Shown here: piece after piece, positions 10,931-40,789 of the stretch
How the letters are laid out: each line of letters opens with the position of its first letter
Numbering within the stretch: the first letter of the stretch is position 1
NCBI GenBank assembly: GCA_964036045.1
Contig: OZ038378.1
Coordinates: 141,856,001-141,920,000, forward strand
Source of the DNA: Eutreptiella sp. 'Long Island Sound 2002'
Lineage: Eukaryota; Protista; Euglenida
Length of the DNA: 64,000 nt
Direction of reading: 5' to 3'
Program-made: the position numbers and the translations under genes
The notes under the pieces: generated by a model
The model's database searches: none
What the model was told of the DNA's origin: nothing
The model's input: only the letters and a program-made list of their open reading frames with translations

Positions 10931-12034
10931 ATGTCCTGTCATATCGCATTGACTGTGCCTTTAATTTGGACACTTTCCTCGTATGTGACAGTAACCTGCG
11001 GTCAAATATGCGACCATGAGCGTTACGGATCGCCCCAGGAAGTACCTTTTCTGAGTGCTCCCCGTCTTACTTCAGTCCCTGAGCACCCGGACAATTATTT
11101 AAGTACGGGGTTGTACTTAGTAAACCCTTTGGCACCAGAGACCATTTACCCTCACGGAGATTTGCGCATCCAAGCGTTTGCAACAAGCCATCGCCTCTAC
11201 ATCAACATGCAGATACCAGGACCATACCATTGCAGCGCGCAGGAGTTTGAGGCTTGCCCAGCGGTAGCAATGATGTTCCAGGTGGGGGACAACGCCACAT
11301 TTTGGGACATGGGTGGTTGTCCACCCGCAAAGGAATGTGACCCTGCTGCGTGTGAAGGCCATGAACTAGACGTCGTGCAGTTCAGAATTGGTGGCACCAT
11401 TCCCGGGCGCCTGTATCGTCCCCAGGACGTTGTTGGCAGCAATACCACCCAAACCCACGCCGTCTGGGACATGCATGCCACCAGCACCTTTTGCATCCGC
11501 ACCGACACCGCTGCCCCTGCCTCGGGGGATTGGATGGCCTCGTGGAGACACTCAAGCCTGCCTTCCCAGTTTCCTCATTTTGTGGAGGCTGGTGACCCGT
11601 TTGGGTCTGCAAATGAGGCAGGAATGTACAGCTTTACGCTGCACCGGGCGCTGCTGACAGAGGGCAAGGCTCGTGAGGACGTTCAATTTCATGCACAACG
11701 TGTATACCTCTTTGGGGTTGCATACTGGTACCCTGCTGGGGGGCGGCCATGGAAGCCTTGGGTGCATCATGCCACTTGTGGTTGGCTGGCATTGCGCGTG
11801 CGGCCCCAGCACGTGGAATCAACTACCCTTACGTTGCCCCGACTGGCCTGGGCGTTGAGTGCAGCATTGCCTGTTGTATCCATCGTCACAAGTATTACCT
11901 TGTACCTGTTTATGAGGACATGGCTCCACCATATGAAACGGAGGGAAAGGTCTGGGTTGCTGGACGAAGGCCAGGCCCATGACAGGGGTCGCGTTGCAGG
12001 ATTGAAGTTGGGCATATCCTCCACTCCACACTGA
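10931..12034 (+). CDS. Type I membrane protein with EB_dh/DOMON-like (putative heme b-binding) ectodomain, 367 aa
   Basis: Hydrophobic N-terminus; DLRIQAFAT..LYINMQ, AVAMMF, LDVVQF, YSFTLHRALLT, DVQF..YLFGVAYW..HH pattern of EB_dh-like domains; C-terminal TM (LAWALSAALPVVSIVTSITLYLF). AG at 10919-10920, 10 nt before the ATG, fits a trans-splice acceptor. Confidence 0.7.
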   Translation: MSCHIALTVPLIWTLSSYVTVTCGQICDHERYGSPQEVPFLSAPRLTSVPEHPDNYLSTGLYLVNPLAPETIYPHGDLRIQAFATSHRLYINMQIPGPYHCSAQEFEACPAVAMMFQVGDNATFWDMGGCPPAKECDPAACEGHELDVVQFRIGGTIPGRLYRPQDVVGSNTTQTHAVWDMHATSTFCIRTDTAAPASGDWMASWRHSSLPSQFPHFVEAGDPFGSANEAGMYSFTLHRALLTEGKAREDVQFHAQRVYLFGVAYWYPAGGRPWKPWVHHATCGWLALRVRPQHVESTTLTLPRLAWALSAALPVVSIVTSITLYLFMRTWLHHMKRRERSGLLDEGQAHDRGRVAGLKLGISSTPH

Positions 12035-21222: not shown

Positions 21223-21496
21223 TGAATGAATATCGTCATCTTGGGATGTATGCCAGAAGAGGGAGTCTGACAAAATGTAGAAGAGCAAAGGCCACACAAA
21301 ATGCACACTTGGAGTGAGGTGCGAAAGTCGTGACTTGTGGCCAATCCTCTGGATCTCGTGGTGAACCTCTGACGCTCCCCCTCAAGCGTGCTGGGGAGGG
21401 CGCAGGGCAGACGCCTCCCCTTTCCTCAGGCGGTATGTCGTGAGGCGAAGCCACCGGCCGTCGCACACATGGCATAGCACTGCATCAGCCCGTCTC

Positions 21497-22160
21497 ATGC
21501 TCCGATGCCTGCTCATCTCCGCCATGGTCCTGTTGATCACCTCCGCCACATACGAACATCTGCCGGGCAGGGCCTGCCCCGACCGCCACGAAGTGTTCTC
21601 CCGCGTTGACGTAGCGCTGGACGCGTGTCGCGATCTGTGCACAGATCAGCGCAACTGCCTGTCGTTCGCGTGGCGCCGCGCCGATGGCGCCTGCCACGCG
21701 TCCTCGTCCTGCACCGCCTCTCGGTCTGTAGTCGACCCCACCTTCGATCTGCACGTCAAACGAGTGCAGATCGATTGGGCGGTGGTCCCGGATTCCGCTT
21801 GCGTTGACCACAGCGAGACCACGGCGACCCGGCAGCCGAGCGCGGAGCAGTGCCGGGGGTTATGTGAGGCCGACGGGGACTGCGTGTCCTACGGATGGCA
21901 GGACCACACGAAGACGTGCCGCCCGTCGCACACGTGCGCCTTTGCCGCGGATGCCGTTGAGGCGCCCGGGTGGGTGCTGGGCCTCAAGGAGGTGCGGTAC
22001 GCCGAGGACTGCCTCTTGGGGCCCTGGAGCTACGCGCCGTGCTCCGCCCTGTGCGGCGCGGGGACCACCACGCGCACGCGGCCGGTGCTGGTACCGGCGG
22101 CGAACGGCGGCACGTGCGGCGCGACGCGAGAGGCCGTGGGCTGCACTGGGCCCTGTGCAG
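21497..22160 (+). CDS. Giant receptor-ADP-ribosyltransferase, exon 1: signal peptide, 2x PAN/apple-like, TSP1
   Basis: MLRCLLISAMVLLITSAT signal; two C..C..C..C PAN-like modules; CLLGPWSYAPCSALCGAGTTTRTR (TSP1). Donor GCAG|GTATTT, phase 1. Confidence 0.88.
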
Positions 22161-22715
22161 GTATTTGGATTGCATGGTCGGCTCTGGGGCCTTGAGCCCC
22201 ACGTTTTCACGGTTGTGAGCCAACTGCCCTTCCCCGTGCCCCCGCCCAAAGTCCCCCCGCCCTTCACGCGTTCCTTTGTCCTGCCCCACTACCGTTCCCT
22301 GCCACTTGCTTCGCCATTCCGCCTGGATAGGGCCTCTATCTTGCCTTTGTGGCCGTAGCAGGCGATCGCCAACGCACAGCCCCGAGATTGCACCTCAACA
22401 AGGGACGCGCACCTGGACAATGACCGTATGGTGCCCTCCCCCCCTCCCCCTTCAAGACGGGGCACAACCGATGGAGCGCGCGCGCGCATTGGAAGTGGCC
22501 ATATTCTGGGCACCCCGGGCCGGTGCGCGAACCGTGGCGCGCGCGCGCTTTGGGAACGAGCCTCTTTTTCACCCCCAGGCACGACGCCCAAGCGATGGGG
22601 CGCGTGCACACCGCAGGATGGGTAGTCACACTGTAGCCATGTCCCCCACTGTCATGGGGCGTCCGGGAGGTATTCCCGGGCACTCCGCCTTCCCGGCCCA
22701 TATCATTGTGCCCAG

Positions 22716-25700
22716 GAATCTGCCAACCGAACGTCAATGTCGCGGGCTGTTCCGCGGTCTCCGTCGACGTCACGACGTACGGCAGCGGCGATGAGGTCGG
22801 CTGGTACCTTCTCGAGGCCTGCCCCCCGGTCGCGGTGTTCCCCGGCGCCTTGGCCTCGCACTCCGTGTCCTCCACGTCCGTCTGCCTGGCTCCCGGCCTG
22901 TACACCGTCGTGGCCGTGGACGCCGCAGGTGACGGTTGGGACGGGGGCACGGTCTCCGTCTCGATGGCGGGGTACGCGACGCCCCTCGTTCCCATCGCCG
23001 CGGTCCATGGGCTCGGCTTCAGCGTCCCGTTCGAAGTGCCGGAGGTCGCGAATTGCGGTGTCCCGCGCCAACCGAACGTGGACTACACCGACTGCGACCA
23101 CACGTCCGTTGGGCGCTGCAGCCCCGCGTGTCGACGCGGGTACCGCGGCACGCCCACGGCGGTGTGCGGGTCCGACGGGCGGTGGAGGTACGGGGGCGCC
23201 TGCGTGTCCGGCGCGTGGCGGTGCGCGTTTGGGACGCTGCTGCGTCTCGGCGCGGCGGGGGACGTGCACTGCTACTCGACGGACGCGCGGCGCTGCGCGA
23301 GGGTGCCCCCGCAGGTCTGCGGGGCCCTTCGCACCGAGCCTCCCCCGGAGGCGTCCATCGTGGCGTGCGGCGCGGAGGAGAGGCCGGGGGACGGGCGTGG
23401 CGAGGGGCCGGGCTGGTGTCGGTCGGTGTACACGTGGCTGTCGGACGGTGCCGCCTGCGGCGACGGCATCCAGAACGGTCTCGAGACCGGGCCGGACTGC
23501 GGCGGTCCCGCGTGCGCGGCCTACCCGGCCGGCACCCCCCGCGGCCCTGCGCCGTGTGGCGCCGGGACGGGCCCGCGCCGCTGCCCCGCAGCCCGCCCGT
23601 GCTGCTCCCGGCGCGGCGTTTGTGGGGGCGGCCCCGGCCACTGCGGGCCCGGCTGCCAGGCCAACTACAGCCACGGGGCGGCCTGCGCTCCGGACCGCCG
23701 CATGGACGCCCTCAGCCCCGCCCGACCGGACGGGGCATTGGTCGGGCGTGGGATCGCTGGTGCAAGGCCCGCTTGGCACAGGCCCGTGCCGTGGGATCCT
23801 CCCTTTTCCACAGGCACAGGCCATGGGAATCCCCTGAAAGCGCGACGTATGGTCCCTCAGGGCGAGACCCCTTCGGCGACCGTTACGCACACCCCGACGC
23901 CCACACTCACCCTGACCCCTTCGCCTTCCGCAACTGCCTCCATGACGTCCTCTAATACCCCCACGGATACCCCTTCCGAAACGCCGTCGATCACCCCAAC
24001 CTCTACTATTTCCTCTAGTTCCACCTGCACTGGAACTCCTACCACCACTCCCAGTCACACCCCCACTACAACCTCCACACCGTCTTCCACACCATCCATC
24101 ACCCCCAGCAGCACCACAACCCCCACGGATACTCCCTCTGAAACGCCATCGGGGACTCCTACTCCCACCGCTACTCCCACCGCTACTCCCACCACTACTC
24201 CCACATTTTCTATCACTGCGACCAGCGCTATTAGCCCCACGGATACCCCTTCCGAAATGCCGTCGATCACCCCAACCTCTACTATTTCCTCTAGTTCCAC
24301 CTGCACTGGAACTCCTACCACCACTCCCAGTCACACCCCCACTACAACCTCCACACCGTCTTCCACACCATCCATCACCCCCAGCAGCACCACAACCCCC
24401 ACGGATACTCCCTCTGAAACGCCATCGGGGACTCCTACTCCCACCGCTACTCCCACCGCTACTCCCACCACTACTCCCACATTTTCTATCACTGCGACCA
24501 GCGCTGTTAGCCCCACGGATACCCCTTCCGGAACGCCGTCGATCACCCCAACCTCTACTATTTCCTCTAGTTCCACCTGCACTGGAACTCCTACCACCAC
24601 TCCCAGTCACACCCCCACTACAACCTCCACACCGTCTTCCACACCATCCATCACCCCCAGCAGCACCACAACCCCCACGGATACTCCCTCTGAAACGCCA
24701 TCGGGGACTCCTACTCCCACCGCTACTCCCACCGCTACTCCCACCACTACTCCCACATTTTCTATCACTGCGACCAGCGCTATTAGCCCCACGGATACCC
24801 CTTCCGAAACGCCGTCGATCACCCCAACCTCTACTATTTCCTCTAGTTCCACCTGCACTGGAACTCCTACCACCACTCCCAGTCACACCCCCACTACAAC
24901 CTCCACACCGTCTTCCACACCATCCATCACCCCCAGCAGCACCACAACCCCCACGGATACTCCCTCTGAAACGCCATCGGGGACTCCTACTCCCACCGCT
25001 ACTCCCACCGCTACTCCCACCACTACTCCCACATTTTCTATCACTGCGACCAGCGCTATTAGCCCCACGGATACCCCTTCCGGAACGCCGTCGATCACCC
25101 CAACCTCTACTATTTCCTCTAGTTCCACCTGCACTGGAACTCCTACCACCACTCCCAGTCACACCCCCACTACAACCTCCACACCGTCTTCCACACCATC
25201 CATCACCCCCAGCAGCACCACAACCCCCACGGATACTCCCTCTGAAACGCCATCGGGGACTCCTACTCCCACCGCTACTCCCACCGCTACTCCCACCACT
25301 ACTCCCACATTTTCTATCACTGCGACCAGCACTATTAGCCCCACGGATACCCCTTCCGGAACGCCGTCGATCACTCCAACCTCTACTACTTCCTGTAGTC
25401 CCACGTACACTGGAACTCCTACCACCACTCCCAGTCACACCCCCACTACAACCTCCACACCGTCTCCCACACCATCCATCACCCCCAGCAGCACGGATAC
25501 GCCCTCAGACTCCACCTCCGCAACGCCATCGCTCACGCCTACTCCCACCACTACTCACAGTCCCACTGCCACTACAACCCCCACTACTACTCCCACTGCT
25601 ACTCCCAGCCCTACCCCATCTACAACCTCCACGCCATCCTGCACGCCATTTACCACCCCCAGCAGCACCACAACCCCCACGGCCACTCCCTCTGACACGC

Positions 25701-28700
25701 CATCGATCACTCCGACTCCCACCACTACTCACAGTCCTACTCTTACCACAACACCCACTACTACACCCACAACTACTCCCAGCCCCACACCATCTACAAC
25801 CTCCACGCCATCCTGCACGCCATCTATCACCCCCAGCAGCACCACAACCCCCACGGCTACTCCCTCTGAAACGCCATCGATCACTCCGACTCCCACCACT
25901 ACTCACAGTCCTACTCCTACCACAACGCCCACTACTACACCCACTAGTACCCCCAGCCCCACACCATCTACAACCTCCACGCCATCCTGCACGCCATCTA
26001 CCACCCCCAGCAGCACCACAACCCCCACGGATACTCCCTCTGAAACGCCATCGGGCACTCCTACTTGCACCGCTTCTCCCACCACTACTCCCACCACTAC
26101 TCCCACATTTTCTATCACTGCGACCAGCACTATTAGCCCCACGGATACCCCTTCCGGAACGCCGTCGATCACCCCAACCTCTACTATTTCCTCTAGTTCC
26201 ACCTGCACTGGAACTCCTACCACCACTCCCAGTCACACCCCCACTACAACCTCCACACCGTCTTCTACACCATCCATCACCCCCAGCAGCACGGATACGC
26301 CCTCAGACTCCACCTCCGCAACGCCATCGATCACTCCAACATCTACTACTTCCTCTAGTCCCACCCACACTGGAACTCCTACCACCACTCCCAGTCACAC
26401 CCCCACTACATCCTCCACACCGTCTTCCACACCATCTATCACCTCCAGCAGCACCACAACCCCCACGGCCACTCCCTCTGAAACGCCATCGGGGACTCCT
26501 ACTCCCACCGCTACTCCCACCACTACTCCCACATTTTCTATCACCGCGACCAGCACTATTAGCCCCACGGATACCCCTTCCGGAACGCCGTCGATCACTC
26601 CAACCTCTACTACTTCCTGTAGTCCCAGCCACACTGGAACTCCTACCACCACTCCCAGTCACACCCCCACTACAACCTCCACACCGTCTCCCACACCATC
26701 CATCACTCCCAGCAGCACGGATACGCCCTCAGACTCCACTTCCGCAACGCCATCGATCACTCCAACTCCCACCACCACTCACAGTCCCACTCCCACGACA
26801 ACTCCCACTACTACTCCCAGCCCTACCCCATCTACAACCTCCACGCCATCCTGCACGCCATCTACCACCCCCAGCAGCACCACAACCCCCACGGCCACTC
26901 CCTCTGAAACGCCATCGGGGACTCCTACTCCCACCGCTACTCCCACCGCTACTCCCACCACTACTCCCACATTTTCTATCACTGCGACCAGCACTATTAG
27001 CCCCACGGATACCCCTTCCGAAACGCCGTCGATCACCCCAACCTCTACCACTTCCTGTAGTCCCACCTACACTGGAACTCCTACCACCACTCCCAGTCAC
27101 ACCCCCACTACAACCTCCACACCGTCTTCCACACCATCCATCACCCCCAGCAGCACGGATACGCCCTCAGACTCCACCTCCGCAACGCCATCGATCACTC
27201 CAACTCCCACCACCACTCACAGTCCCAGTTCCACCACAACGCCAACTACTACACAGAGTCCCACTCCCACGACAACTCCCACTACTACTCCCAGCCCTAC
27301 CCCATCTACAACCTCCACGCCATCCTGCACGCCATCTACCACCCCCAGCAGCACCACAACCCCCACGGCCACTCCCTCTGACACGCCATCGATCACTCCG
27401 ACTCCCACCACTACTCACAGTCCTACTCCTACCACAACGCCCACTACTACACAGAGTCGCACTCCCACAACAACTCTCACCAGTACCCCCAGCCCCACAC
27501 CATCTACAACCTCCACGCCATCCTGCACGCCATCTACCACCCCCAGCAGCACCACAACCCCCACGATCACGCCCTCTGGAACGCTCTCAATCACTGTGAC
27601 TCTCACCACTACCCCCAGTGTCAGCCTCACCGCCACCGGCACTTTGACACCGACTGATAGTCCTTCCGGAACGCCATCGCTCACCCCAACTCCCACCAGA
27701 ACGTCCACCACTACTTCCACACCCACATCCACCCCAACTCCCACAGTCACGACAAGCCCCTCACCTACCCTCACTGCTACGTTCAGTCCTTCTCCCACGT
27801 CTTCTGCAACCTCAACTGACACACCAACCCATACTCCTACGCCCACTACCACCCCAAGCCTCACGCCCACTCCCTCTTTCACTTCGTCACCAACCCCCTC
27901 GGTTTCTCTAACACTTACCCCCAGTACCACCCCGACCCGGAGCGCTTCCCCCACCGTCACCCCCAGCCTGTCGCCCACCCTCACCCCCACCATCACCTCG
28001 TCATGCACCCCCTCGTGGACAACCACCCCAACTTTTTCATTGAGCCCCACTCCCACGTGCACCCGGACGCCCACTGCCACCGTCACCCCGAATCCCTCCG
28101 TTACCCCTTCGCGAACGCTGACCCCGAAACAATCCGACACCACATCACTGACCGACAGCCCCACAGCCACAATGTCCTGGAGTGGCACTGTCACAGCCAC
28201 CCCTTCGTCCAGCCCCAGCCCCACCCAGACCCCCTCACCAACCGCGACACTCAGCCACACACCCACCGCCACCCGAAGCGCATCGTTCACCCTCAGCCGC
28301 ACCATTACCCTGACTGCCTCGCCCTCCCACACCCCGTCGAGGACGCCCACTCCAACTGCCACGACCACCCCCTCGCCCTCTCCAACACCATCCCCCACGC
28401 CCAGTGCCACCCCTAGTGCTACCCTGAGCACGACTCGCACCGTCACCACCACCCCAACCCCCACTGGAAGCCCTTCGCAAACCGCTTCACCAACGATGAC
28501 GCTAACCCCTAGTCCCACCCCCACCCAAAGCCATACCCGCACTTCCACCCCTACACCCACCCTCACCCCAAGCCCGTCCGCCAGTGCCACTCCCAGTACC
28601 AGCCCCACGCCCAGTCCCAGTGCCACCCCCTCATCATCCACCAGCGGAACCGGCACAGTGCTCCCGACAGCAACAGCCACCCCCAGCTCCACCTTCACCC

Positions 28701-31700
28701 TGACCCCCACGTCGACCGCCACCGTGACCTTCACCCCCTCCCAGAGCCCCACGGCATCGCAAAGCCCCACCGAGACAAAGACGGTGGGGGGCACCAACAC
28801 TCAGACTCAGACCCGGACGCCGACGCCAACCTACACACCCTCCGGCACCCCCTCCCTCTCCCCAAGCCCCTCGTCCACCCCAAGTCCATCCGCCACCCTC
28901 ACCTCCTCCTCCACCCCATCACCGACCCACAGCCCGACCCCGACGCGCACCGCCTACGTCACCCCGTCCATCAGCCCGACCGTCACCCTGACCCCGACGC
29001 CTTCCCCTACGCCTTCACCGACGGCCATCGGGACCCGAACAGCCACCGGCTCCCGGACCGCGACGGTGACAGTCACGCCCACCGCCTCGCGAAGCCAATC
29101 GGACACCCGATCCCGCAGCCCCACAACGACCGGGACGCCCACCGCGACGGCGTGCGCCACCGGCACGCAGACCAGGTCCTCGTCCGCCACCACGACCCCC
29201 ACCCCCACCCGGACCCGCACGCCGACGTACACCCACACCCCCACGTACACCTCCACCGCCTCTCTAACGGGCAGCCGCCCCCCCACCGCCAGCGCCACGG
29301 GCACGCCCACCGCCACCGCCGTGCCCACCCGCACCGCGACCCAGACCTCCACCGCGGAGCTGGTGCTGTGCACCGCCGGGGGCGCGGCCCCGAGCGTCAC
29401 TGACGGGCAGCTGCTGCTGGTGACCGGGCCCGGCCTGTGCGTCGAGTCCGTCGGCCTCGGGCCGGGCTCCACGTTCCTCTTCACGAAAGAAGTGCGCGTG
29501 CACGTCATCGCCCTAAACGGCGCCGCGAACCTCGCGCTGGAGGCCGGGTGCGCGGCCCCGCCGTGCGACTGGAACTTCACCGCCGCCGATCAGGGGCGGT
29601 CGGTCGCCGCGCTGCTCGACGCCACCCCCAACGTCACCGTCCTCCTCCTCTACTACCCCCCCGCAACCGCCGCCAGCCGCCGCGGGGCCGGCCCCCCACG
29701 GGCCGCGGCGGACACCCTCACCGCCCTCTTCATCGTCGTCCACGGGCCCTCGGTCGCGTTCTTCCTGCTCCTGCTCAGCGGGTTCCTCGCGGGGCTGCCG
29801 GTCTGGCTGGCCCTCGCGCACTGGCACGCGCGCCGCATGCTCAACACGGAGGTGAAGCCGAAGTACTGGGAGACGCACCACGACTGGCCCCGCTGCATCC
29901 ACCCGCGCTGGGCCAACCCCTGGATGGAGGTGGGGCTGGCGCTGGGCGTCTACCTCGTCGTGGGCGGGCTCCTCTGCCTCGGCGTGACCTGGGCAATGCA
30001 CCACTCCGAGGCCCCGGGCTGCCCCCAGGTCTGGTGCTGGGCCGCCACCGCCGCCGCCGGGGGCCTCGTGCTGCTGGTCCTGGGGCCGCGCGCGCTGCGC
30101 GACGACGCCGTCCACATCTGCCCCGCGTGCGACCGCCCCGTGTCGGCCTGGCGGTTCCGGGAGGCGTACCTCGCGCCGCTCCCGGCGGACCACCCGGCGG
30201 CCGCGCCCGCGGCGTGGGAGCGGAAGGGGCACCGGCGGTGCATGGCGTGCCGGCGGTGCGGGGGCGTGGTCTGCCACGGGCAGTGGCCGGACGGCCCCGC
30301 GCACCGCCCGTACCACGTCGGGTGCTGGGAGTACCTGGTCAGCGACGTGTGCTCCGGCGACGAGCGCGCGGCGGCGTGGCTGGCGAGCGAGCCCGGCCTG
30401 ACGGACCTCGAGCTGGCGTTCGTGCTGGCGGCGGCCATCGAGGCGGGCAGCGAGGCCGTCGTGGAGCGGCTGCTGGACCACTCGCCGGGGCTCCAGGACC
30501 ACCCGCTGCCAGGCGCGCCCAACGCGCGGCACTGCGCCGCGCGCTGCGGGAACCTCGGCGCCCTCCGCGCGCTGCTCGCGCGCCGCGCGCTCCCCGGGGG
30601 CCGGGGGCCGGGCTTCCTGGACGACTTCGCGCAGGCGGACGTGCCGGTGCACGCGCTGCACGTCGCCGGGCTGGACAAGGGGAAGGGGAACGACGTGTAC
30701 GTGCACCACCCGCCGCTGTACTACAACGGGCACCCCGTGTACGTCGGCCACGCCACCGGCCACTACATCTACTACTTCACGGGGAAGGGGGGCGACGGCT
30801 GGTGCCTGTCGGACTTCCTCGGGAACGGGGACACGGAGTTCCGGCTGCTGCTCGACCCGGTGGTGCTGGCGCCCGGGGCCGACGACGACGCCAGCGCCGA
30901 CGACGACGAGTCGGCGTCGGCGTTCCCGTCTTTCGGCCCCAAGGCGGGGTCGTGGCGGCACGGCTACTTCTCCCAGCCGCACCTGATCCCCAAGCGGCAG
31001 AAGTCCGAGAAGCGCAAGAAGTGGAATTGGCCGGAGGTCAAGGTCCGCTGGCGGAGCCCCGACTCCTCCGGCGCCACGCAGAAGGGGTCGGACGCGCAGC
31101 TGCCCACGGGGCCCTTCCCGCACCTGATCTCCGGCATCCCCGTCGCCGAATCGTTCCACAGCCCCGCGCCGGCCCAGGACAAGCCCAAGAAGACGCAGGA
31201 GGACCTCCGGCTGCGGGTGGTCCCGCACACGAAGTCGCTCCTGGAGGCCGCCGCGCGCTCGGGGGATCCCGCGACGGTCCTGTACGTCGTCGGGCTGTAC
31301 AAGGAGCACTGCCCGCAGTGCCTCTCGTGGCAGTACTACGTCGGCGACGGCCTGTGGGGCACGTACCCCCCCGCCGTCCAGCGCGACATCGGCGAGGCGG
31401 CGGCCCGCGGCCTCGGGGGCCTCACCATCAAACTGGAGAAGGCGGAGGTGGAGCTGCGCCTGGACGCCCTCGAGCACCGCCGGGGGGAGGCGGTGCAGCG
31501 GATGCGGTGCCAGCTCGCCACGATGTTCCAGTACCCGACGCGGGACGGGGCCTGGGCCGTCGACTCGCGCCCGACGCACGTGGACTGGGACGCGGCGTAC
31601 GTCCTGCACGCGGCCGGGGCGCTGGCGGTGGTGGCCCCGGACCGCCGCACGCTCGCGCTGCTCGTCGACGAGGGGGCCGTGGACCCGTCGCTGTGGGAGC

Positions 31701-32800
31701 CCCCGTGCAAAGACGCGAAGTTCCGGCAGTGGGCCCTGGAGCCGCCGCCGGAGCTCCGCGCCGCCGAGCGGCCCGAGGCCCTGGGCCCCGCCCCCCCGGC
31801 CCCGGCGTACGTGGAGCCGGGGCTGCCGCCGGATGCACCGCCCGCGGCGTCGTCGTGCGACCCCGACGCGCCCGGGCTCTGCGTCACCGCGGCGCAGCCC
31901 AATGCAGAGCCGAAGGCAGGCACCCCCCCACCGGACGGCGCAGAGGCCGCCGGGGGACCCGCAGCCGCACCGCAGGACGCGGCTGCGCCGCCGCCGTCGG
32001 ACTCGCCGGCGGGCTCCGTCCAGGCCCCACCTGCGCCCGACGACGCGGACAAGGACCCGTGCGCACTCCCGCGCGCGAATGCGGACGCGCAGGGGCTGCC
32101 TGACGAGCAGCAGCCGCAGGGGCCCGCGCCCGCGCCCGCGGCCGCCGACATGCGCACCGGTGCGGATGCCCACAGTAACACGACGTTGGATGTGGACAGC
32201 GACGCAGACGCAGACGCAGACACGAAGCCGCAGTCGAACGAGAAGAAGAAGTCGCATGCACCGCCCCCGGTCACTATCTCGCCGCCGTACGGTGATGCGG
32301 AGGCCGGGACTTGCAGCCAAGAGAACCCCGGCCCACCGCACAGCCCCGTCACACCGCACAGCCCCGTCACGCCACGCAGCCCCGTCACCCCAGGCTCACC
32401 ATACGGCCCCTGGAAACCCTCGAAGCAGCTCAGCACTGTGACACGGCGCATGCAGTGGTACTGGTTCGACCAGGTCCTCAGGAACTTCTTCGTGAGGGCC
32501 TTCCCGGAGCCAGACCCCAACGTGGAGGACATGCTGAACGTGCGGCGGCAGTCCTGGCAACCCGGGACCGCGCTGCCGCGGCCCACGGGCAGAGGGCCTC
32601 GAGGGGGGGCGGCGGGCGACAGCAGGTTCACAGACGGCCTGGAAGCGCCGGACGAGAGCCCGCGCAGCGAGTTCTATGGGGCAGACTACTCCTGCGACGT
32701 TGGGACGCTCGACTTCTGCATGAAGCTGCCTCGGAATCCGTTGGGGTTGCCATTCTTGCAGTTTCCCATCGTCGAGATGTGCCGGGAGGCCGTCATGAAG
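22716..32800 (+). CDS. Giant receptor-ADP-ribosyltransferase, exon 2 (10085 nt): Cys-rich modules, hevein-like domain, mucin stalk, TM helices, LIM-like, ankyrin-like, WWE
   Basis: Acceptor CCCAG|GA, phase 1, matches exon 1; lies within the 3416-aa open frame; donor ATGAAG|GTGTCT, phase 0. Confidence 0.9.
23960..25500 (+). repeat. Coding tandem repeat, 276-bp (92-aa) unit, about 5.5 near-identical copies
   Basis: Unit starts at 23960, 24236, 24512, 24788, 25064 and 25340; the antisense shadow ORFs recur every 276 nt. Shuffled variants continue to ~27600. Confidence 0.93.
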
Positions 32801-33900
32801 GTGTCTACACACGCTCCCATGGCCCTCGGAATGAGCGAAACCCGTGTCAAGAGTACCGTGGCGGGGGGGGGGGGATTTGGAATAGGCGAAATGTGGTACA
32901 ACAAAATTGTACCAAATTTTGCCATGTACCAAATTCCCACGGTATTTAAGGACTAGAGATTCGATTCTACACATGCTGAACAGTGGCCGAGCCGTTTATC
33001 CGGTCAACCACTGCGCTAGACTGCAGACTCACTGCTCTCCATCGCTCGTAGATGTAGGCTGCCAGAATTTTGTACCAAATATTGCCGTGGTATTTAAGAA
33101 TTCATACCAAAATTTCACTACACCGAATTTTTGCCATTGCAAATTTTGCACATTCCAAATTCTCCCCTCCTCCCCCTTTAGTCGCTGTGCCTGTTCCGTG
33201 ATGGCATCAGCGCCTTCTTATTCTCCTCTGGTTTTTGTGTTGGATCACGCGTCATTGTTGCCTCCTTGTGCACTCGTTCTGTCACTTGCTCGTTGTGGGG
33301 CGTGCAGACCGGGGCGACACAGTGCGAAGGGGTCAAAGCGTGCGGCGTGCACTTGACAGCCCGAGCCTAACCTTTGAGCCATATTTCCTTCACAACTCCA
33401 CCCGAAGTGACTGTGATCATGGAAGCAGGTATACACTGCGCAATGTGCCCAAGAAAGACATGGTAGCCCCCTGTTTCGTACTCTCGGTGGGCGGGGTGCG
33501 TGGTGTGCAGTGTCGAGTGCTCCCTCCCCCGTCAGCTTGGCCCCGATACTCCGTCTCTGTCGGCCAAGCCCTCAGGGCCGACCGCCGGTTGATGGTGAGC
33601 AATGGCCAAGGCCCTGTATGTCCCATCGGTTGACGGAGTAGACCGGACACCCGGACGGCCGGTTGTCTGCGAGCCGGCGTGTCTGCTGACATCCTTGTCC
33701 CGTTTCTTTCAACAAGCTCCATGAGCTGACCCCCACATGTCAAGGGTCGGGGGGTAGCAACGCAGCAAAGGCTCACGTGCCAGTGCTTCCCGAAGTTGAA
33801 GTTGAGAGATCACATCGTTCATCGGTGCACGTTCGACTTGTCTGGGGTGTTTGCGTGTCCGCATGCGATTGTTTGTGTGCTTTTGCCCATGGGCGGTCAG

Positions 33901-34173
33901 GTGCACGAGCTGCAGCGCCAGCGCGTGACCCTCAGCCCCCTCCACATCCTCCCAATCTACGTCTACACCTACGAGCTCACCGGCGATGGGGAGCAGATCT
34001 ACAGCGCCATGAATCGCGCCATGCGGCTGCACGACGAAGAGGCCATTGATTTCTGGCGCCCTTTGATCTGGCAGATCGACCGGGTGCTGCTGCTGCTGCC
34101 CCCGAAGAGGGCCAAGTTGTACCGTGGCATTGGCGTCCACTTCAATGAGACGAGCTACAAGACAGGGTCGCAG
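33901..34173 (+). CDS. Giant receptor-ADP-ribosyltransferase, exon 3: ART N-terminal part with catalytic Arg (LYRG)
   Basis: GGTCAG|GTG acceptor and TCGCAG|GTGTCA donor, both phase 0; YTYE..IYSAMNRAMR..KLYRGI. Confidence 0.9.
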
Positions 34174-35739
34174 GTGTCAGCTGTTTCGCGTGGCCCAAGT
34201 TGTACCACCCCATCTCTATGCCCGACTACCCTGGCGCCTTGCCCACCGTGCATCTTGTGCGTCGTGGTCGGCAGGTCCCCACATCCCCTGACCCGGTTCG
34301 GAGCGGTTGGGGCTCCCAGTCCTGCCTTTGGTTGGTCACCTGTGTTAATAGATGGAGAAGGAGGTGACCACGATGACGAATGGCGTGACAGCGCATACAG
34401 TTAAAACTTAGAACAAGGTAGCACAGAATGAATGAAGGCACATGCAATCAAACAATTGTACACATTCAGTGCTGTTCACCATGACACAGGGTATCCTTTG
34501 GCAATCATCCATGAAGACACTTTGTGTACATTCCATGTCACCAACGACTGTTTTTGGAAAGGGGATTCGCAGCAAAGGGTGCACCATGCAATGATACATC
34601 CAACATTCGTTTTTGGGAAGCTGGCCATCCAACATGCGTTGCAGTCCTATCAGTATGTCATATGTATGTGCACGCTTATATGCGCAAATGCAGACACTCA
34701 CGACAGCACCGGGACTGATTCTATGGGCCACGCGCAAGGCGCTTTGGAACCTCCAATGTAACGTTTCGGCCGGGGGACTACATTCTCCTGAAACCTCCGT
34801 TCAGCTTTGGGTGTCCAAGATGTGAGATGTGGGAGCCGCTCCAGGAACGGCACCCGAGCCTGCGCAACTTCCAAGCAGTGTTACCACACTTTTTGCAGCA
34901 AGGCAAACTTTTGCCCACGCACTTGGCACCATTGGTATGCTTTGCCGTGCACCCCACCCAACGCATCCGGTGAATCCCCAAAACTCACCGTTTTATTGTT
35001 TGCTTGTTTGACCTGGTGGATTGTTGCTCGCAGTCCGTCGTACTATTGATTTGTCTTTCATCAACCTTCAGGGGGGCACTGAATTCCCCACTCCCTATGC
35101 ATGGTCCGCTTGCAAAAAGAGGCAGCCCTAAAACATCCTTACCATTTTCAAACTGCATTTTCGACCCACATTTACAGCTCTGACACTGTGCGGGGATTCC
35201 CATGCAACCAACAACATATCGTAAGCACCAGCAGATTGGGACAATTTTTTTCAAACCGATGGCTCCCAATCAGGTGGTGTGTACATACCGTGCAAGGAGG
35301 GTGGGGTAGCAGGTGAGGAGTGCCAACACCGCATGAAATTGTGCAACATCGAATACGGTCGTTGGGCCACCGCATGACCGTCCATCGATCGGCCAATGTC
35401 TCTCATGATTCTCCCCACTATGGGGTCCTCGATGTTGGCCAATTTTTTGCAAATATAATTTGTGCGCCCACTACGGGCTGGCCCTCCATGTGGGCAAAGT
35501 GGTTTAATCCTCGCTGAACCCTAACCCGGTGATCAAAGGTGTTTGTTCATCATCTCGGTTGGTTCCAATGCAAATGGCCCCCTCCAAGGACATGCTAGGC
35601 ACCCAAACCGCCCCCAAAAGGGCATTTTTGGGCTATTTTTGACAGATTTTAAAAACCTAGGTCCATTCGCGGCCGCCACCATTGAGTTTCTTGCTCAAAT
35701 TATGTGGGATGACACCTCACACCCACAGCTATCATCCAC

Positions 35740-36365
35740 CAAAATCACCTCGAAGAGAGGTTTTTAAATCAAGCGCAGGTGCGGGCGTCGTATACCCCCC
35801 CCCCCCTTTTGGGGTCATTCGCGTAGCATACCCCAAGGCATGATATTTCATGTCCAACCCCTTGTAAAATCATTATTTTGCCCAATAAGAGCATCCATCC
35901 CCCAATGGACTTTTTGATTCTGAGGCCTCTGTCCCCTAAAACTGGATATCACTTTTTTGGGAGGGGGGGGGCTGGGGGGGGGTCAAAAGTTTTCGCCTAG
36001 AAGGCTCCAAGCAGTGGAGAGGCATATCGCTGTCACATCAGACGCCGGTCGAATGGTAACGCACCCGACTTCAAAGTTTTAGGCCGGCGCTTTGAATCGT
36101 GGTCGGTTGACTGTCGCCGGCGGCGCCATATTCGCCCGAACGGGGTTCGAACCGCCGACGGTGAAGTTCTGGCCGGCTGCATTACCATTCGGCCACTGCT
36201 TGTCCGGAGGTGAAACATCTCCCCACTGCTTGAAGCCGCGTCTGCCATTGACAAAAAATCCAAACTGTGTGTTTCTGTCTGACTGACTGCTGGCCTGGCT
36301 AAGGGACTGATTGGCTGACTGTCAGCTTCTCTTCGAGGTGCACTGCCGGAGGCAATAGAATTTGG
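35740..36365 (+). repeat. Dispersed repeat family A, copy 1 (contains inverted tRNA-like modules)
   Basis: Shares aaatcacctcgaagagagg, cccaatgga.ttttttgatt, tcaaaagtt and g.aggcaataga with 45560-46142 and 57560-58190. Confidence 0.88.
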
Positions 36366-38345
36366 GCCGAATCCGAAGCACCGTGATGGAGATCTAATTT
36401 TTGCCCATTTTGTGTGTGCTTGCTGATTGTTGCTTGTTGCTACTGCTCCTACTACTGCTACTACTGCTTGCTTGTTGCTTGCTGCTTGCCAAACTTGGTA
36501 GGTCCACCTTGGATACTAAAGAGGGTTACAAAACCTAGCTAGTTGCACCATCTTGGTAAGCGTAAGCCTAACCCCAACCCTTGCTTCCTCAAGGTCCGCA
36601 GTGTGGGACCTCAAGCCCAAGCCACGTCCGCGATCCCTGTGGCTCATATCAACAGTCGCTTAGCTGACCTACCCGCAAAGCTCGAGGAGCTAAAACACGG
36701 TGAGTTGGCTCATATGGTCTAGGTCCAGGGCATCCACGGCAATGTAGGTCGGGGTGTTTGGGTGGTCCCCCAAGGGAAGGGTGTTGACGGGTGAGGGCTG
36801 CTAGTTGGGGGGCGCAGGGTATTGGGCAGGCGGGTGCTTTTTGCCCGCGGGGACCATGGGCCGGCCATGGGGCAATGGTGAAGGATGTCATTCTAGGGGG
36901 TGTCAGGGTGGTGCACTGGTGGTGGCCTTGGGGAGGCAGTCTCTCGATGCAGTGGGTTTGGGGCTTTGGGTAGTGTGGGGATCAATATGGTGTGAAGTGT
37001 AAAGGAGCCCATGGCATTGACGTACAAGACTCTGATCGGCGCGCCGAAGACTGGCTATCAAACAAGGAAGACGAGGCACAGAAAGGTGGGGTGTTGTCTT
37101 CATCATCGTCGCCATCCTCCTCCTTGTCGGCATCTTCATCCTCCTCCTCTTCATTGTCATCATCCTCTTCGGCATCATCAAAGGAGGAAGTTCCACAGCC
37201 AAGTAAAAGGAATTGGTACATAAAGACCGTTGCTAGAAACGACAAGCAGACCACGCACTAAGGATTTCACAGCCCCACAACCCCACAATAGCTATCCGCT
37301 GAGGTGATACCAACACTGTGGAATGGGACAGCATGCAATGGCCATCAGTGGGTGGCTAGAATGGTCTGGTAGTGGTAATGCAACACTGATTGAATGGCCA
37401 TGGCGGGCCGACTTCACCACGTGGGTGGGCCCCACCAATCATGGTGCTAATATGTCTCGCTATGCAAAATTGTCACCCTGACCTTCAACACGATGTACTG
37501 TACTGGTTTGCGCCGGCGGCATTTGGTTACCAAGCGTTGTCAACCTATGGCCCGTGTGTAGAGCCCCCTTGTAGCATGGGCTGGCGAAACGTACCTGTTT
37601 TTCTTCTTCTTGATGAAGTTTGCCATGCGAGGCATGCTGTATTGGAATGGCCATGTGGAAATGCAATGACATTTTGGGGTCCACAATGGGATGAAACATC
37701 GCCACTCCATATACCACTAATTCGTCCACTTGGGTTTCCACCCCTTCCAGGATTCTTACCGCCTAGAGGCCTGAGTGGGGTGCCATGATGCCCTTTTTGG
37801 AAAGGTAGCCGGGGTAGTTTTGGGGTCCACGTGCCCTTAAACACAATACCACCCGTGTTAATGAACTTTGCCTTTTTTGGCCGATTTTCATTTCCTGATA
37901 ACAATGACTTTTTTTCCAGACCCCCATCAAAGAGTGGCACAAAAGGCCAAAACTACCCAGCACCAAAACACATAGAGGCCATAAGTCCAGAACCCCCCAG
38001 AGTCTGATGAATAGATGGGGGAAAGGGGCGAGTGGTGCCTATAGAAGTGCACTGCTGCCTGAGTGTTGTTTCCGTGCCCGTCTGCTTGCTAACTAATTTC
38101 CCTGATGTTATGCGGTGCCTAGAAAATCCCCCTGGGCTTTCCATCCTAAGCTCAAACCTGCACCCACATGCTCTGCTGCAGCCCACCGCCCAACCTGCAC
38201 CCACACCCACACCCACACCTGCATCCACACCCACACCCGCACCCTCACTTTCACCTGCACCCAGAGCCATGGCCACGTCCACGCCCGTACCCACACCCAC
38301 CCACACCGTTACTCATCCTAACACCGTTCTTGCTCCACTCTCCAG

Positions 38346-38622
38346 GTATGCTGGCCCGCCTTCTCCAGCGCCTCCGCCACCCGCACGGTGGCCGAAGACT
38401 TCGTCAAGGGGGACGAGGGGACGTTGTTCTTCCTGCAGAGCACAGCAGCCCGCGCCATCAGTCGCTTCAGCAAGTTCCCAGACGAGGACGAGGTCATCTT
38501 CCGCCCCAACACCGTTTTCGAGATTACATCGACGCTGTACGGCACCTCCGAGATTGGGGAGTTTTATGCGAGCGTCGACAACATCGCAATGGTTGAGCTG
38601 ACGACCGCTGACGCAACCCAAG
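38346..38622 (+). CDS. Giant receptor-ADP-ribosyltransferase, exon 4: ART FSSAS and EDE motifs
   Basis: CTCCAG|GTA acceptor gives YKTGSQ|VCWPAFSSAS..FPDEDEVIFRPNTVFEI; donor CAAG|GTCATT, phase 1. Confidence 0.9.
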
Positions 38623-38639
38623 GTCATTCCCGTCACTCT

Positions 38640-39755
38640 TTTCCATCACTCTGTGCCCTGACACCATCACTCTACAACGTTGCTCTACACTGTTACTCTA
38701 CCCCATAGCTCTACACCACAGCTCTACACCATCACTCTGCATCATCACTCGTGCTGGTGTAGACTGATGGTGTAGAGTGATGGTCCTGACTGCTGATGAT
38801 GAGTGATGGTGCAGCCTGAGAGTGTAGAGGTCGGAGGAGAATTCAAACGCCTGAGGGGATTCCCCAGGTGCTTCATAATGATAGGGATTGCATGTCTTGT
38901 GCGCCAGCCCTGCCTGATTCGGTGGTATGCTTCCCCTTCTGCACTCGAGGTTCAACCTGGAACCTGCGTTCTCAACCGGCTGCGTGACCGCTAAACTGCG
39001 AGGAACCACCCAAGCAACAGTATGCAGCAAGGCCAGATAGCAAAGGCACAGAGTAGAGTGATGGTGCAGAGCGATGATACAGAGCGTCCACACCATCGCT
39101 CTGCATCATTGCTCAACACCAGCGCTTGACAACACTGCTCTGCACCGTCGCTCCACCCCATCACTCCACCCCATCACCCTACATCATTGCTCTACCCCAG
39201 TATTCTACCACATCCCTCTACACTGTTACTCTACCAACTCTCTACGGCATCCCTCTACACCATCACCCGGGCCCATCACACTACCCTATCAGACTACGCC
39301 AGCGCTACAACATCACTTCGCCGTTACTCTACAGTGTTACTCTACACCATCACCCCACACCATCACTCTACACCAGCACTCTACAACACCCCCGCTCTGC
39401 ACCATTGCTCTACACCATCACTCGATAACACCATCGCTCTGCCGTTACAGCGTCTCTGAGATTTCCGTGATCTCGCTGAGAAGAACCTTCCGTGATTTAT
39501 CATGGCATTTCCGTGCCTCAAAAAATTTCCATATGCATCAAAAATCTTGGTTTTGGAGCCTCGGGGGGGGGATTTCATTGCTTTACCCCTACTTCCCCCA
39601 GATGCCATAGTGTAAAGTGAATCTGTACAGTGATGGTGTAGACTGATGGTGCAGAGGGATGGTGTACAATGTTCGCACTGCACCATCACCCTGTGCCACC
39701 CCCCACAGCCATGCATCATCCCTCTACATCATCTCACAACACCAACACACTCCAC
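38640..39755. repeat. Intronic minisatellite (~13-nt CACCATCACTCTA-like unit) in alternating orientation blocks
   Basis: Forward blocks ~38640-38750, ~39085-39430 and ~39680-39755; reverse blocks ~38755-38830, ~39050-39080 and ~39625-39670. Confidence 0.8.
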
Positions 39756-39761
39756 TCGCAG

Positions 39762-40789
39762 CGCAGCACGACGGCGGCGGCGCCAACAACTTGACGTACG
39801 TTGGCTTCTCCCTGAACAACACCTTCGCCTACGCGCTCCTCAATTTGGTGGTCAACTCCCCCATTGCCCTATTGGAGTCCCTGGAGACCCGGCCCGACCC
39901 CCAGGGCGGCCTGACGGCCCGCCTGGCCCTAAGGCGCAACCCCCACGGCGAGCTCACGGAGCTGCCGGGGCCCGAGGCCATCGAGACGGTGGAGGAGGGC
40001 CCCCCGGGGGCCGTGGCCGGGGACGATGCGCCGGAGGTCCCGTCCGACTGGTCGAGCGGCGACTCGGACTCGGACGCCCCGCCCAACAGCCCCGAGGTCT
40101 GGGACGAGGACGTCCCCGACCCCGTGGCGACGCTCGGGACGCTGCTGCGGGCGGACTTTGATTCGGCCGCGAGCCTCGACCTCGGGTTCCGGCGCAGGAC
40201 CGGGGGGGGCTCGGAAGGGCACGCGCCGGAGGCGGAGGGGGGGCCGGGGCAGCGGGAGGCAGCCGAGAGGGAGGGGGGGCCGGGGCAGCAGGAGGCAGCC
40301 GAGAGGGAGGGGGGGCCGGGGCAGCAGGAGGCAGCCGAGAGGGAGGGGGGGGTCGAGGCGGGGCCGGAGGCGGGGGGGGCAAAGGGGGTGATGGCGCCGT
40401 GGGAGGACCCGCGTAAAGGGCCAGTGGCCGAGCCGTGGCGTCCGCCGGAGGACGAGGAAGGCGAAGCGTCGGGGTCGCCCATGGTCGTCAGCAGCCGGCG
40501 CTTGCGGTGGCCATTGCACGTCAGTAGTTCGCAGACGGACGCCGGACGGCTCAGCCCGATATCGGACATTGAGAGTCCGAAGGAGGAGGCGTTTCCAAAT
40601 GCCCCTCTGCTGCCGGACCCCGTGGTCTCCGGCCATTCTCAAGTGCGGGACCCCACCGTCATCCCGGGGTCTGGGCCCGACGAGGGGGGGGGCGCGCGGT
40701 GGCACCCGCCCGCTGCCGTCGACCCTCAAGGGCTGTCAGGGGAGTTGCGGATTGATATGCGGGCGAGATCGGGAACGCTCCGTCCCTGA
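39762..40789 (+). CDS. Giant receptor-ADP-ribosyltransferase, exon 5: short folded segment and acidic disordered tail with 3x 12-aa repeat
   Basis: TCGCAG|CG acceptor, phase 1, matches exon 4; GC-rich coding style; GGPGQ(R/Q)EAAERE x3; stop at 40787-40789. Exon total is 12327 nt = 4108 aa plus stop. Confidence 0.75.

Follow-up and report, generated by a model that had tools for sequence, protein, structure and literature searches.

A predicted receptor-type mono-ADP-ribosyltransferase encoded by a five-exon gene of the euglenid Eutreptiella

Can a single euglenid gene join a very large adhesive ectodomain to an ADP-ribosyltransferase (ART) that faces the cytoplasm? The question is raised by a 64,000-nt stretch of the genome of Eutreptiella sp. 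'Long Island Sound 2002' (contig OZ038378.1, positions 141,856,001 to 141,920,000; hereafter, the window). An initial annotation of this stretch had proposed a 4108-aa protein with a signal peptide, an adhesion head, a stalk of about 1800 aa, about three transmembrane (TM) helices, and an intracellular ART of the R-S-E type with catalytic motifs split over several exons. Comparison of the locus with its paralogues and with proteins of other euglenids suggests that it is probably an intact gene of five exons that encodes a receptor-type mono-ADP-ribosyltransferase, the mechanism of which we infer below.

Gene structure of the locus

All positions are given in window coordinates on the plus strand. 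The reading frame of 12327 nt (4108 codons and TGA) is distributed over five exons separated by four introns, all with GT..AG boundaries. The elements that define the gene model and the ART domain are listed below, together with the GC content at third codon positions (GC3) where it is characteristic.

Exon 1, 21497..22160 (+): start ATG, signal peptide (approximately the first 18 residues), two PAN/apple domains, TSP1
Intron 1, 22161..22715 (+): 555 nt, phase 1; the sole GT/AG pair of such length keeping the frame open; paralogue similarity breaks exactly there
End of exon 2, 32617..32800 (+): N-terminal ART helices; homologous to residues 1-60 in the paralogue domain that was modelled
Intron 2, 32801..33900 (+): 1100 nt, phase 0; missing from the closest paralogue and three others; GC3 ~0.56; holds a moderately repeated element
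Exon 3, 33901..34173 (+): helical part and first catalytic strand of the ART; catalytic Arg at 34123-34125 (LYRG); shares 89% identity with the closest paralogue
Intron 3, 34174..38345 (+): 4172 nt, phase 0; very high-copy repeats and a microsatellite
Exon 4, 38346..38622 (+): catalytic core of the ART; FSSAS at 38361-38375, EDE at 38484-38492; 98% identical to the closest paralogue
Intron 4, 38623..39761 (+): 1139 nt, phase 1; the closest paralogue lacks it, one 507-aa frame spanning the equivalents of exons 4 and 5
Exon 5, 39762..40789 (+): conserved post-ART element, acidic low-complexity tail, 36-nt repeat (40234-40351), TGA stop

Only the exon set 21497-22160, 22716-32800, 33901-34173, 38346-38622, and 39762-40789 leaves the frame uninterrupted when GT..AG introns of the proposed sizes (555, 1100, 4172, and 1139 nt) are removed, and neither of the two split codons, GGA and GCG, is a stop. 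An open frame of 3416 codons (22706-32956, plus strand) passes from a Cys-rich head through a Thr/Ser/Pro stalk and three hydrophobic segments into a long non-repetitive tail; read past the exon-2 donor, it is closed by an in-frame stop at 32954-32956. In the upstream frame, the ATG at 21497 opens the signal peptide followed by two PAN domains and TSP1.

Comparison with paralogous loci supports the exon joins. Three paralogues encode the counterparts of the exon-2 end, exon 3, and exon 4 in the same order and without interruption, each in one open reading frame (ORF), so that the protein reads through the junctions of the window gene (C11:13.54 Mb, 5511 aa; C12:47.79 Mb, 5993 aa; C20:7.33 Mb, >6800 aa). 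At the junction of exons 2 and 3 the paralogues read ...VMK-VHEL... without a break, and at the position of intron 3 the equivalents of exons 3 and 4 are contiguous or 1-4 codons apart within a single open frame. The closest paralogue, at C11:68.59 Mb, has neither intron 2 nor intron 4 and retains an intron at the intron-3 position. Similarity to this locus detected by blastn falls into the blocks 21493-22164, 22713-..., ...-32803, 33899-34177, and 38343-38608, with the ends of exons 2 and 3 abutting in the paralogue. The edges of these blocks lie at most 4 nt from each of the six splice sites reached; similarity ends 14 nt before the exon-4 donor is reached, and exon 5 is undetected by blastn.

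The same boundaries are visible in the codon composition. GC3 is 0.82-0.98 in all non-repeat coding parts and 0.61 in the T/S/P-rich stalk, compared with 0.57, 0.52, and 0.39 where the open frame is read on beyond the three downstream donors, 0.53 directly upstream of the exon-5 acceptor, and about 0.51-0.56 in introns 2-4. The ratio of nonsynonymous to synonymous substitution rates (dN/dS) against the closest paralogue is 0.062 in exon 3 and 0.010 in exon 4, with dS above 1. Because paralogue colinearity, similarity edges, GC3, and dN/dS agree to an extent well beyond chance, a single functional gene that includes exons 3 and 4 is by far the best reading. All coordinates of the initial annotation, including those of the three motifs split between exons 3 and 4, could be reproduced.

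The introns contain repetitive DNA of different abundance. In intron 3, very high-copy repeats occupy 35450-36650 and 38050-38300, with a Logan word depth of up to ~150,000 in the former against ~7 for single-copy sequence, and a CA/C-rich microsatellite lies directly upstream of exon 4. The repeat in intron 2 (32850-33250) is moderate, with a depth of 250-540.

Domain architecture and membrane topology

The ART domain was characterized by database and fold searches with single exons or naturally contiguous paralogues as queries. Exon 4 alone matches positions 147-203 of PF01129 (E 8.9e-10, 38.7 bits at a cut-off of 22.3), and a contiguous paralogue matches positions 61-203 of the same family (E 3.4e-16, 59.7 bits); exon 3 alone has no match to PF01129 in Pfam. 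A profile built from 10 paralogues and compared with the PDB retrieves the Vis toxin (2.4e-13), rat ART2.2 (1e-8), and the type VI secretion system effector Tre1 (1e-8). The Arg, the Ser motif, and both Glu residues of the ExE motif are invariant in ten paralogues (53-69% identity). In a wider set of 69 sequences, with identity down to 28%, all have the Arg, the Ser, and the second Glu, and at least 90% retain the first Glu.

The ART domain of a paralogue was modelled with AlphaFold2 (AF2). An alignment of 10 paralogues gave a predicted local distance difference test score (pLDDT) of 40 and an unusable model, while the 69-sequence alignment gave a pLDDT of 93.6 and a predicted TM-score (pTM) of 0.91. 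Foldseek searches with the latter model found XopAI, Vis, HopU1, Tre1, ART2.2, C3, and ExoS, all with a probability of 1.00 and, for the first five, with E-values from 4e-11 to 4e-9. Judged by family, fold, and conserved residues, the C-terminal domain is an R-S-E/ExE ADP-ribosyltransferase domain with an intact catalytic triad under strong purifying selection, and enzyme activity is predicted. Profile and structure comparison thus bear out the ART fold and family membership claimed initially. In the R-S-E clade, the ExE motif of the ADP-ribosylating toxin turn-turn (ARTT) type goes with arginine as the acceptor. The tail encoded by exon 5 comprises 341 residues, has a GC3 of 0.87, and is 45% identical to the tail of the paralogue.

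Whether this domain works inside or outside the cell depends on the segments that precede it, of which the following are encoded by exon 2:

Exon-2 head, 22716..24037 (+): Cys-rich beta module, Sushi-like unit (~23051-23203), hevein-like chitin-binding module (~23555-23662)
Stalk, 24038..29353 (+): mucin-like Thr/Ser/Pro, ~1770 residues, tandem repeats of 162-438 nt
Juxtamembrane ectodomain module, 29354..29752 (+): conserved; two N-glycosylation sequons
TM1, 29753-29824 (+): Kyte-Doolittle (KD) peak 2.26
TM2, 29921-29998 (+): KD peak 2.36
TM3, 30029-30088 (+): KD peak 1.87
Cys/His zinc-finger-like module, 30092..30334 (+): CxxC ... HxxCxxCxxC ... HxxC, with LIM-like spacing
Ankyrin-like helical repeats, weak, 30356..30580 (+)
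Beta-rich module, 30680..30880 (+): motifs NDVYV, PVYVGH, and GWCLS
WWE region, 31217..31669 (+): core ~31319-31456
Linker, 31780..32616 (+): 837 nt, Pro/Ala/Asp-rich, low complexity; an insertion in the alignment, found only here and in the closest paralogue

The three hydrophobic segments lie within 29711-30097, and five paralogues keep the same segment lengths, 24, 26, and 20 residues. Lys and Arg are absent from the 15 residues before TM1, number 3-7 in loop 1 (32-36 residues), and number 0-1 in loop 2 (10 residues). Since a signal peptide and domains of extracellular type stand at the N-terminus, the number of TM segments is odd, and the charges show a positive-inside pattern, the predicted arrangement is N-out, C-in with three spans; the cytoplasmic placement is also suggested because WWE and zinc-binding modules are cytosolic domain types. 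On these features, the ART is very likely to be cytoplasmic. Both the approximate count of three helices and the placement of the enzyme inside the cell, as originally put forward, are therefore upheld, the former by its conservation across paralogues and the latter by the odd TM number, the positive-inside pattern, and the WWE domain between the membrane and the ART.

The ectodomain begins with a hydrophobic N-terminus (KD 1.75) encoded by exon 1 (GC3 0.85), where similarity to the closest paralogue starts 4 nt upstream of the ATG. Exon 1 matches Pfam PAN_1 (E 1.7e-11) and TSP_1 (24.5 bits against a cut-off of 21.6). The 51-residue Sushi-like unit is repeated many times in paralogues, one of which has Sushi repeats recognized by Pfam. 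In a sample of 1820 residues over the stalk, Thr accounts for 39%, Pro for 20%, and Ser for 20% (78% together), and Tandem Repeats Finder detects arrays with periods of 276, 174, 162, 438, and 198 nt; the stalk is probably O-glycosylated. The juxtamembrane module aligns in all five of the paralogues compared and in transcripts 4 and 47 of Euglena gracilis, and a family search with it (29354-29752) returned no relatives. The signal peptide of the initial annotation was recovered, the adhesion head that it described carries two PAN domains, TSP1, and a hevein-like match just under the Pfam cut-off, and its estimate for the stalk agrees with the measured length.

In the region between the membrane and the ART, nine family members share all six ligand positions of CxxC and HxxCxxCxxC without exception, and no aligned sequence that extends to the terminal HxxC lacks it. 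The beta-rich module has eleven invariant columns in the family alignment, and PDB and Pfam profile searches with 30680-30880 gave no relative. A WWE profile of 11 family members matches TRIP12 (1.3e-6), DTX1 (6.7e-6), and Deltex (4e-5), and the members from E. gracilis and E. longa match WWE (PF02825) with 25.6 and 28.2 bits, above the Pfam cut-off; through this family profile the module is assigned to the WWE domain. An overlooked in-frame intron was considered for the linker and ruled out by its coding-like GC3 of 0.84.

Relatives within and outside the genome

The window gene has many relatives in its own genome. In the 2.28-Gb assembly, exons 3 and 4 each have at least 150 matches, and a query with the 1157-residue cassette matches dozens of loci, many of them in open frames of 1000-7500 aa. 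The ectodomains vary: that of one paralogue combines SRCR, FG-GAP, MAM, PAN, and Sushi domains with an RCC1 propeller, and in many paralogues the stalk is missing or replaced while the juxtamembrane module, the three TM segments, and the cassette are kept. Four ART-family loci with the same score lie at C20:1188615-1291448, three of them in 2666-aa frames and one in a 1536-aa frame, and another four-copy array, again with the same scores, is found at C12:23967629-24228013. Such arrays point to a recent, local amplification within the family.

A profile search of 1.84 billion representative proteins retrieved 111 proteins at E <1e-30, several of which are giants with the ART near the C-terminus. 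The named relatives are EG_transcript_4 (5356 aa), EG_transcript_47 (2363 aa), and EG_transcript_309 of E. gracilis, complete ORFs of E. longa, and proteins of Rhabdomonas, Ploeotia, and Entosiphon. EG_transcript_4 and EG_transcript_47 combine EGF, TSP1, and RCC1-propeller ectodomains with WWE and ART, and their alignment with the window protein begins at the juxtamembrane module, spans the three TM segments and the WWE domain, and reaches the ART. In the ORF of E. longa GGOE01024141, Pfam recognizes WWE and ART only, and the alignment extends from TM2 onward. In deeper-branching euglenids, the ART alone was detected. The alignments of the E. gracilis and E. longa sequences place the architecture in cDNA-derived proteins of related species, where the initial annotation had suggested looking for it. 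These two E. gracilis transcripts reach at most 37-65% identity to any locus of the present genome, which is therefore that of a euglenid distinct from the sequenced E. gracilis strain, and the Euglena transcripts are regarded as family members of other species and not as orthologous transcripts because the identity is 29-59%.

Word-based searches were less productive. With the paralogue cassette, a query whose words were drawn from its TM/linker part, no homologue was found, and with the cytoplasmic region of the window protein a single ORF-called protein (P0004) was recovered. The genome also contains approximately 12-24 loci for ADP-ribosylglycohydrolases of the ARH type (PF03747; for example, C14:50501563-50502633), which could be candidate erasers for an arginine ADP-ribosylation system. 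The window gene is not unique: it belongs to a large family of euglenid genes whose products carry the TM-to-ART cassette behind ectodomains that vary.

Elsewhere in the window, an ORF that runs off its start (2-2545, plus strand) is a pol fragment of a Ty3/gypsy-type retrotransposon with reverse transcriptase-RNaseH, integrase zinc and core, and chromodomain parts. A 367-aa ORF at 10931-12031 (+) resembles EB_dh (ethylbenzene dehydrogenase-like, PF09459; E 5e-9), and a GC-rich ORF running off the end (62245-63999, plus strand) matches Mem_trans (PF03547, auxin-efflux-carrier type; E 1.2e-6).

Proposed mechanism, alternatives, and meaning

Vertebrate ecto-enzymes and toxins are the main known forms of R-S-E mono-ARTs in eukaryotes. 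The vertebrate ecto-ARTs (ARTC; for instance, ART1 and ART2.2) share the PF01129 family, the fold, and the R / S-x-S / E-x-E signature with the window ART. However, they are proteins of ~250-300 aa, disulfide-stabilised, and either secreted or anchored by glycosylphosphatidylinositol (GPI), with the enzyme outside and right behind the signal peptide, whereas the window ART begins ~3360 residues into a 4108-aa protein, behind three TM segments, zinc-finger-like modules, and WWE. The best sequence and structure matches are bacterial R-S-E toxins and effectors (Vis, Tre1, HopU1, XopAI, C3, and ExoS), enzymes that act in a cytoplasm. Bacterial toxins enter another cell through secretion systems, in contrast to the window protein, which is host-encoded and membrane-anchored and, if active, would work in its own cytoplasm, with no immunity partner seen. 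Its layout also differs from that of polymorphic toxins and teneurin-like proteins, which expose or deliver a toxin domain from their extreme C-terminus and are encoded beside an immunity gene: the ART is predicted to be cytosolic, it is followed by the 341-aa tail, and none of the other ORFs described for the window (pol, EB_dh, and Mem_trans) is immunity-like.

The layout, in which a signal peptide, binding domains, a membrane span, and a predicted cytosolic enzyme succeed each other in one polypeptide, is that of a receptor enzyme. The logic is shared with receptor kinases, guanylyl and adenylyl cyclases, phosphatases, and TIR-domain receptors, which likewise combine a variable ectodomain, a membrane span, and a conserved cytoplasmic enzyme and have expanded with shuffling; receptor enzymes elsewhere have one helix, whereas the present module has three, and its predicted output is mono-ADP-ribosylation. 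WWE domains are also combined with ADP-ribose chemistry in PARPs and E3 ligases (PARP11/14, RNF146, Deltex, TRIP12, and HUWE1). Those proteins are soluble and pair WWE with H-Y-E (PARP-type) ARTs or ubiquitin ligases, unlike the window protein, where WWE accompanies an R-S-E ART on a membrane receptor. Further counterparts are the unannotated transcriptome proteins EG_transcript_4 and EG_transcript_47, with the same juxtamembrane/3-TM/WWE/ART cassette but different ectodomains (EGF, TSP1, and RCC1 propeller), and the E. longa ORF with its WWE and ART.

These features suggest the following scheme. The head (two PAN domains, TSP1, and the Sushi-like and hevein-like modules), the stalk, and the juxtamembrane module would lie outside the cell, and the zinc-finger-like, ankyrin-like, beta, and WWE modules, the linker, the ART, and the tail would lie inside. 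An event at the ectodomain, such as binding of a ligand, particle, or glycan or a mechanical pull, would be relayed through the 3-TM module and would switch or relocate the ART, which would then use cytosolic NAD+ to ADP-ribosylate arginines, either of the receptor or of proteins close to it. The resulting mark may be read by the WWE domain, which would form a writer-reader pair with the ART, and the ARH-type hydrolases could remove it. We infer that the protein may sense contact or glycans and act in signalling or defence by ADP-ribosylation.

The defence side of this scheme stays alive because of the family size, the ectodomain shuffling, and the toxin-like relatives, and it can be taken further, to a defence or self/non-self receptor with a death effector, in which the ART would disable essential proteins of its own cell or of an invader in a toxin-like manner and not as a reversible signal. 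Recent tandem duplicates, a large family with shuffled SRCR, MAM, FG-GAP, RCC1-propeller, EGF, PAN, and Sushi ectodomains, and bacterial toxins and effectors as the nearest solved relatives all agree with such a receptor. Nevertheless, strong purifying selection acts on the catalytic cassette, the ART shows no sign of arms-race change, no immunity-type gene is adjacent within the window, and the WWE reader and genomic ARH erasers suit reversible signalling equally, so this explanation appears rather unlikely. The protein could also be a structural surface mucin or adhesin whose constitutive cytoplasmic ART modifies the local cytoskeleton or trafficking machinery, without ligand-gated signalling. 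The stalk indeed dominates the protein, euglenids secrete mucilage and have a complex pellicle, and no recognised regulatory or dimerisation domain stands beside the ART, but the stalk is missing or replaced in many paralogues that keep the juxtamembrane module, the three TM segments, and the cassette, which points to transmembrane coupling as the selected feature and makes a mainly structural role improbable.

Two further explanations concern the gene model and the topology, and both are considered very unlikely. If one hydrophobic segment did not span the membrane, the ART would face the outside or the lumen, as do the vertebrate PF01129 enzymes, and TM3 is indeed only moderately hydrophobic (KD maximum 1.87); yet the lengths of all three segments are conserved across paralogues, the charges follow the positive-inside rule for three spans with N-out and C-in, the WWE and Cys/His zinc modules are cytosolic domain types, and the post-TM region is neither Cys-rich nor glycosylated in character. 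Slightly less credible again is a pair of separate genes or a dead copy, with exon 2 as a mucin gene ending at the stop at 32956 next to a fragment comprising exons 3-5, or the whole as an unexpressed pseudogene. The genome is repeat-rich, with transposon-like high-copy DNA in intron 3, and no RNA run of the species contains the region. However, the last 60 codons of exon 2 already encode the beginning of the ART fold, so that exons 3-4 alone cannot form the domain, and a separate gene would lack a start codon context. In addition, no stop interrupts the 12.3-kb frame, all splice sites are canonical, every exon has a coding-like GC3, and dN/dS is 0.01-0.06.

Several observations weigh against the reading of the locus as a receptor-type mono-ADP-ribosyltransferase. 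With respect to transcription, three small RNA runs of the species from 2013 contain no reads of the region, and a read set that includes it covers exons and introns alike at ~7x and is regarded as DNA because of this equal coverage. The topology was derived from hydropathy and charge rules alone, and the modelled ART is that of a paralogue whose identity to the window protein is 65% for exon 3 and 85% for exon 4. Among the accessory modules, the WWE match of the window sequence alone is sub-threshold (E 0.088, 13.6 bits against a cut-off of 21.1), the ankyrin-like repeats are under the cut-off for Pfam Ank_2 (E 0.0083, 17.1 bits), and Chitin_bind_1 is borderline, just below its cut-off (27.1 against 27.8 bits). 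The Cys/His module resembles LIM with PDB profile E-values of 0.5-5 only, has no Pfam match, and has a first loop longer than that of LIM. Finally, the data are compatible with both a signalling and a defence or death outcome, and the ligand, substrate, regulation, and activity are predictions only.

Literature searches found no published description of the proposed receptor-enzyme layout, in agreement with the initial annotation, to whose author it was not familiar. Full-text searches for euglenid ADP-ribosyltransferases or receptor-type mono-ARTs, whose scope did not extend to the ART review of Aravind et al. (2015), found none. The E. gracilis transcriptome paper mentions neither ADP-ribosylation nor transcripts 4 and 47, and a survey of polymorphic toxins does not mention euglenids.

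A membrane-anchored R-S-E ART that is encoded by the host, faces the cytoplasm, and is coupled to a large ectodomain for recognition would give information a new route across the membrane. More broadly, and tentatively, it is possible, although we would not yet call it probable, that such 'receptor ADP-ribosyltransferases' constitute an unrecognised class of euglenid receptors, in which dozens of shuffled ectodomains are connected to one cassette of three TM segments, zinc finger, WWE, and R-S-E ART, and in which an arginine mark is written, read, and erased like the phosphorylation of receptor kinases. Transmembrane signalling or innate recognition would then have been invented independently in euglenids. 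E. gracilis offers a tractable test case, as it can be cultivated and full-length cDNA-derived sequences are available from transcripts 4 and 47. The expansion of the family, with at least 150 ART copies and dozens of receptor cassettes in the present genome and with a cassette conserved in E. gracilis and E. longa, suggests that this lineage uses ADP-ribosylation as a major currency of signalling or defence.

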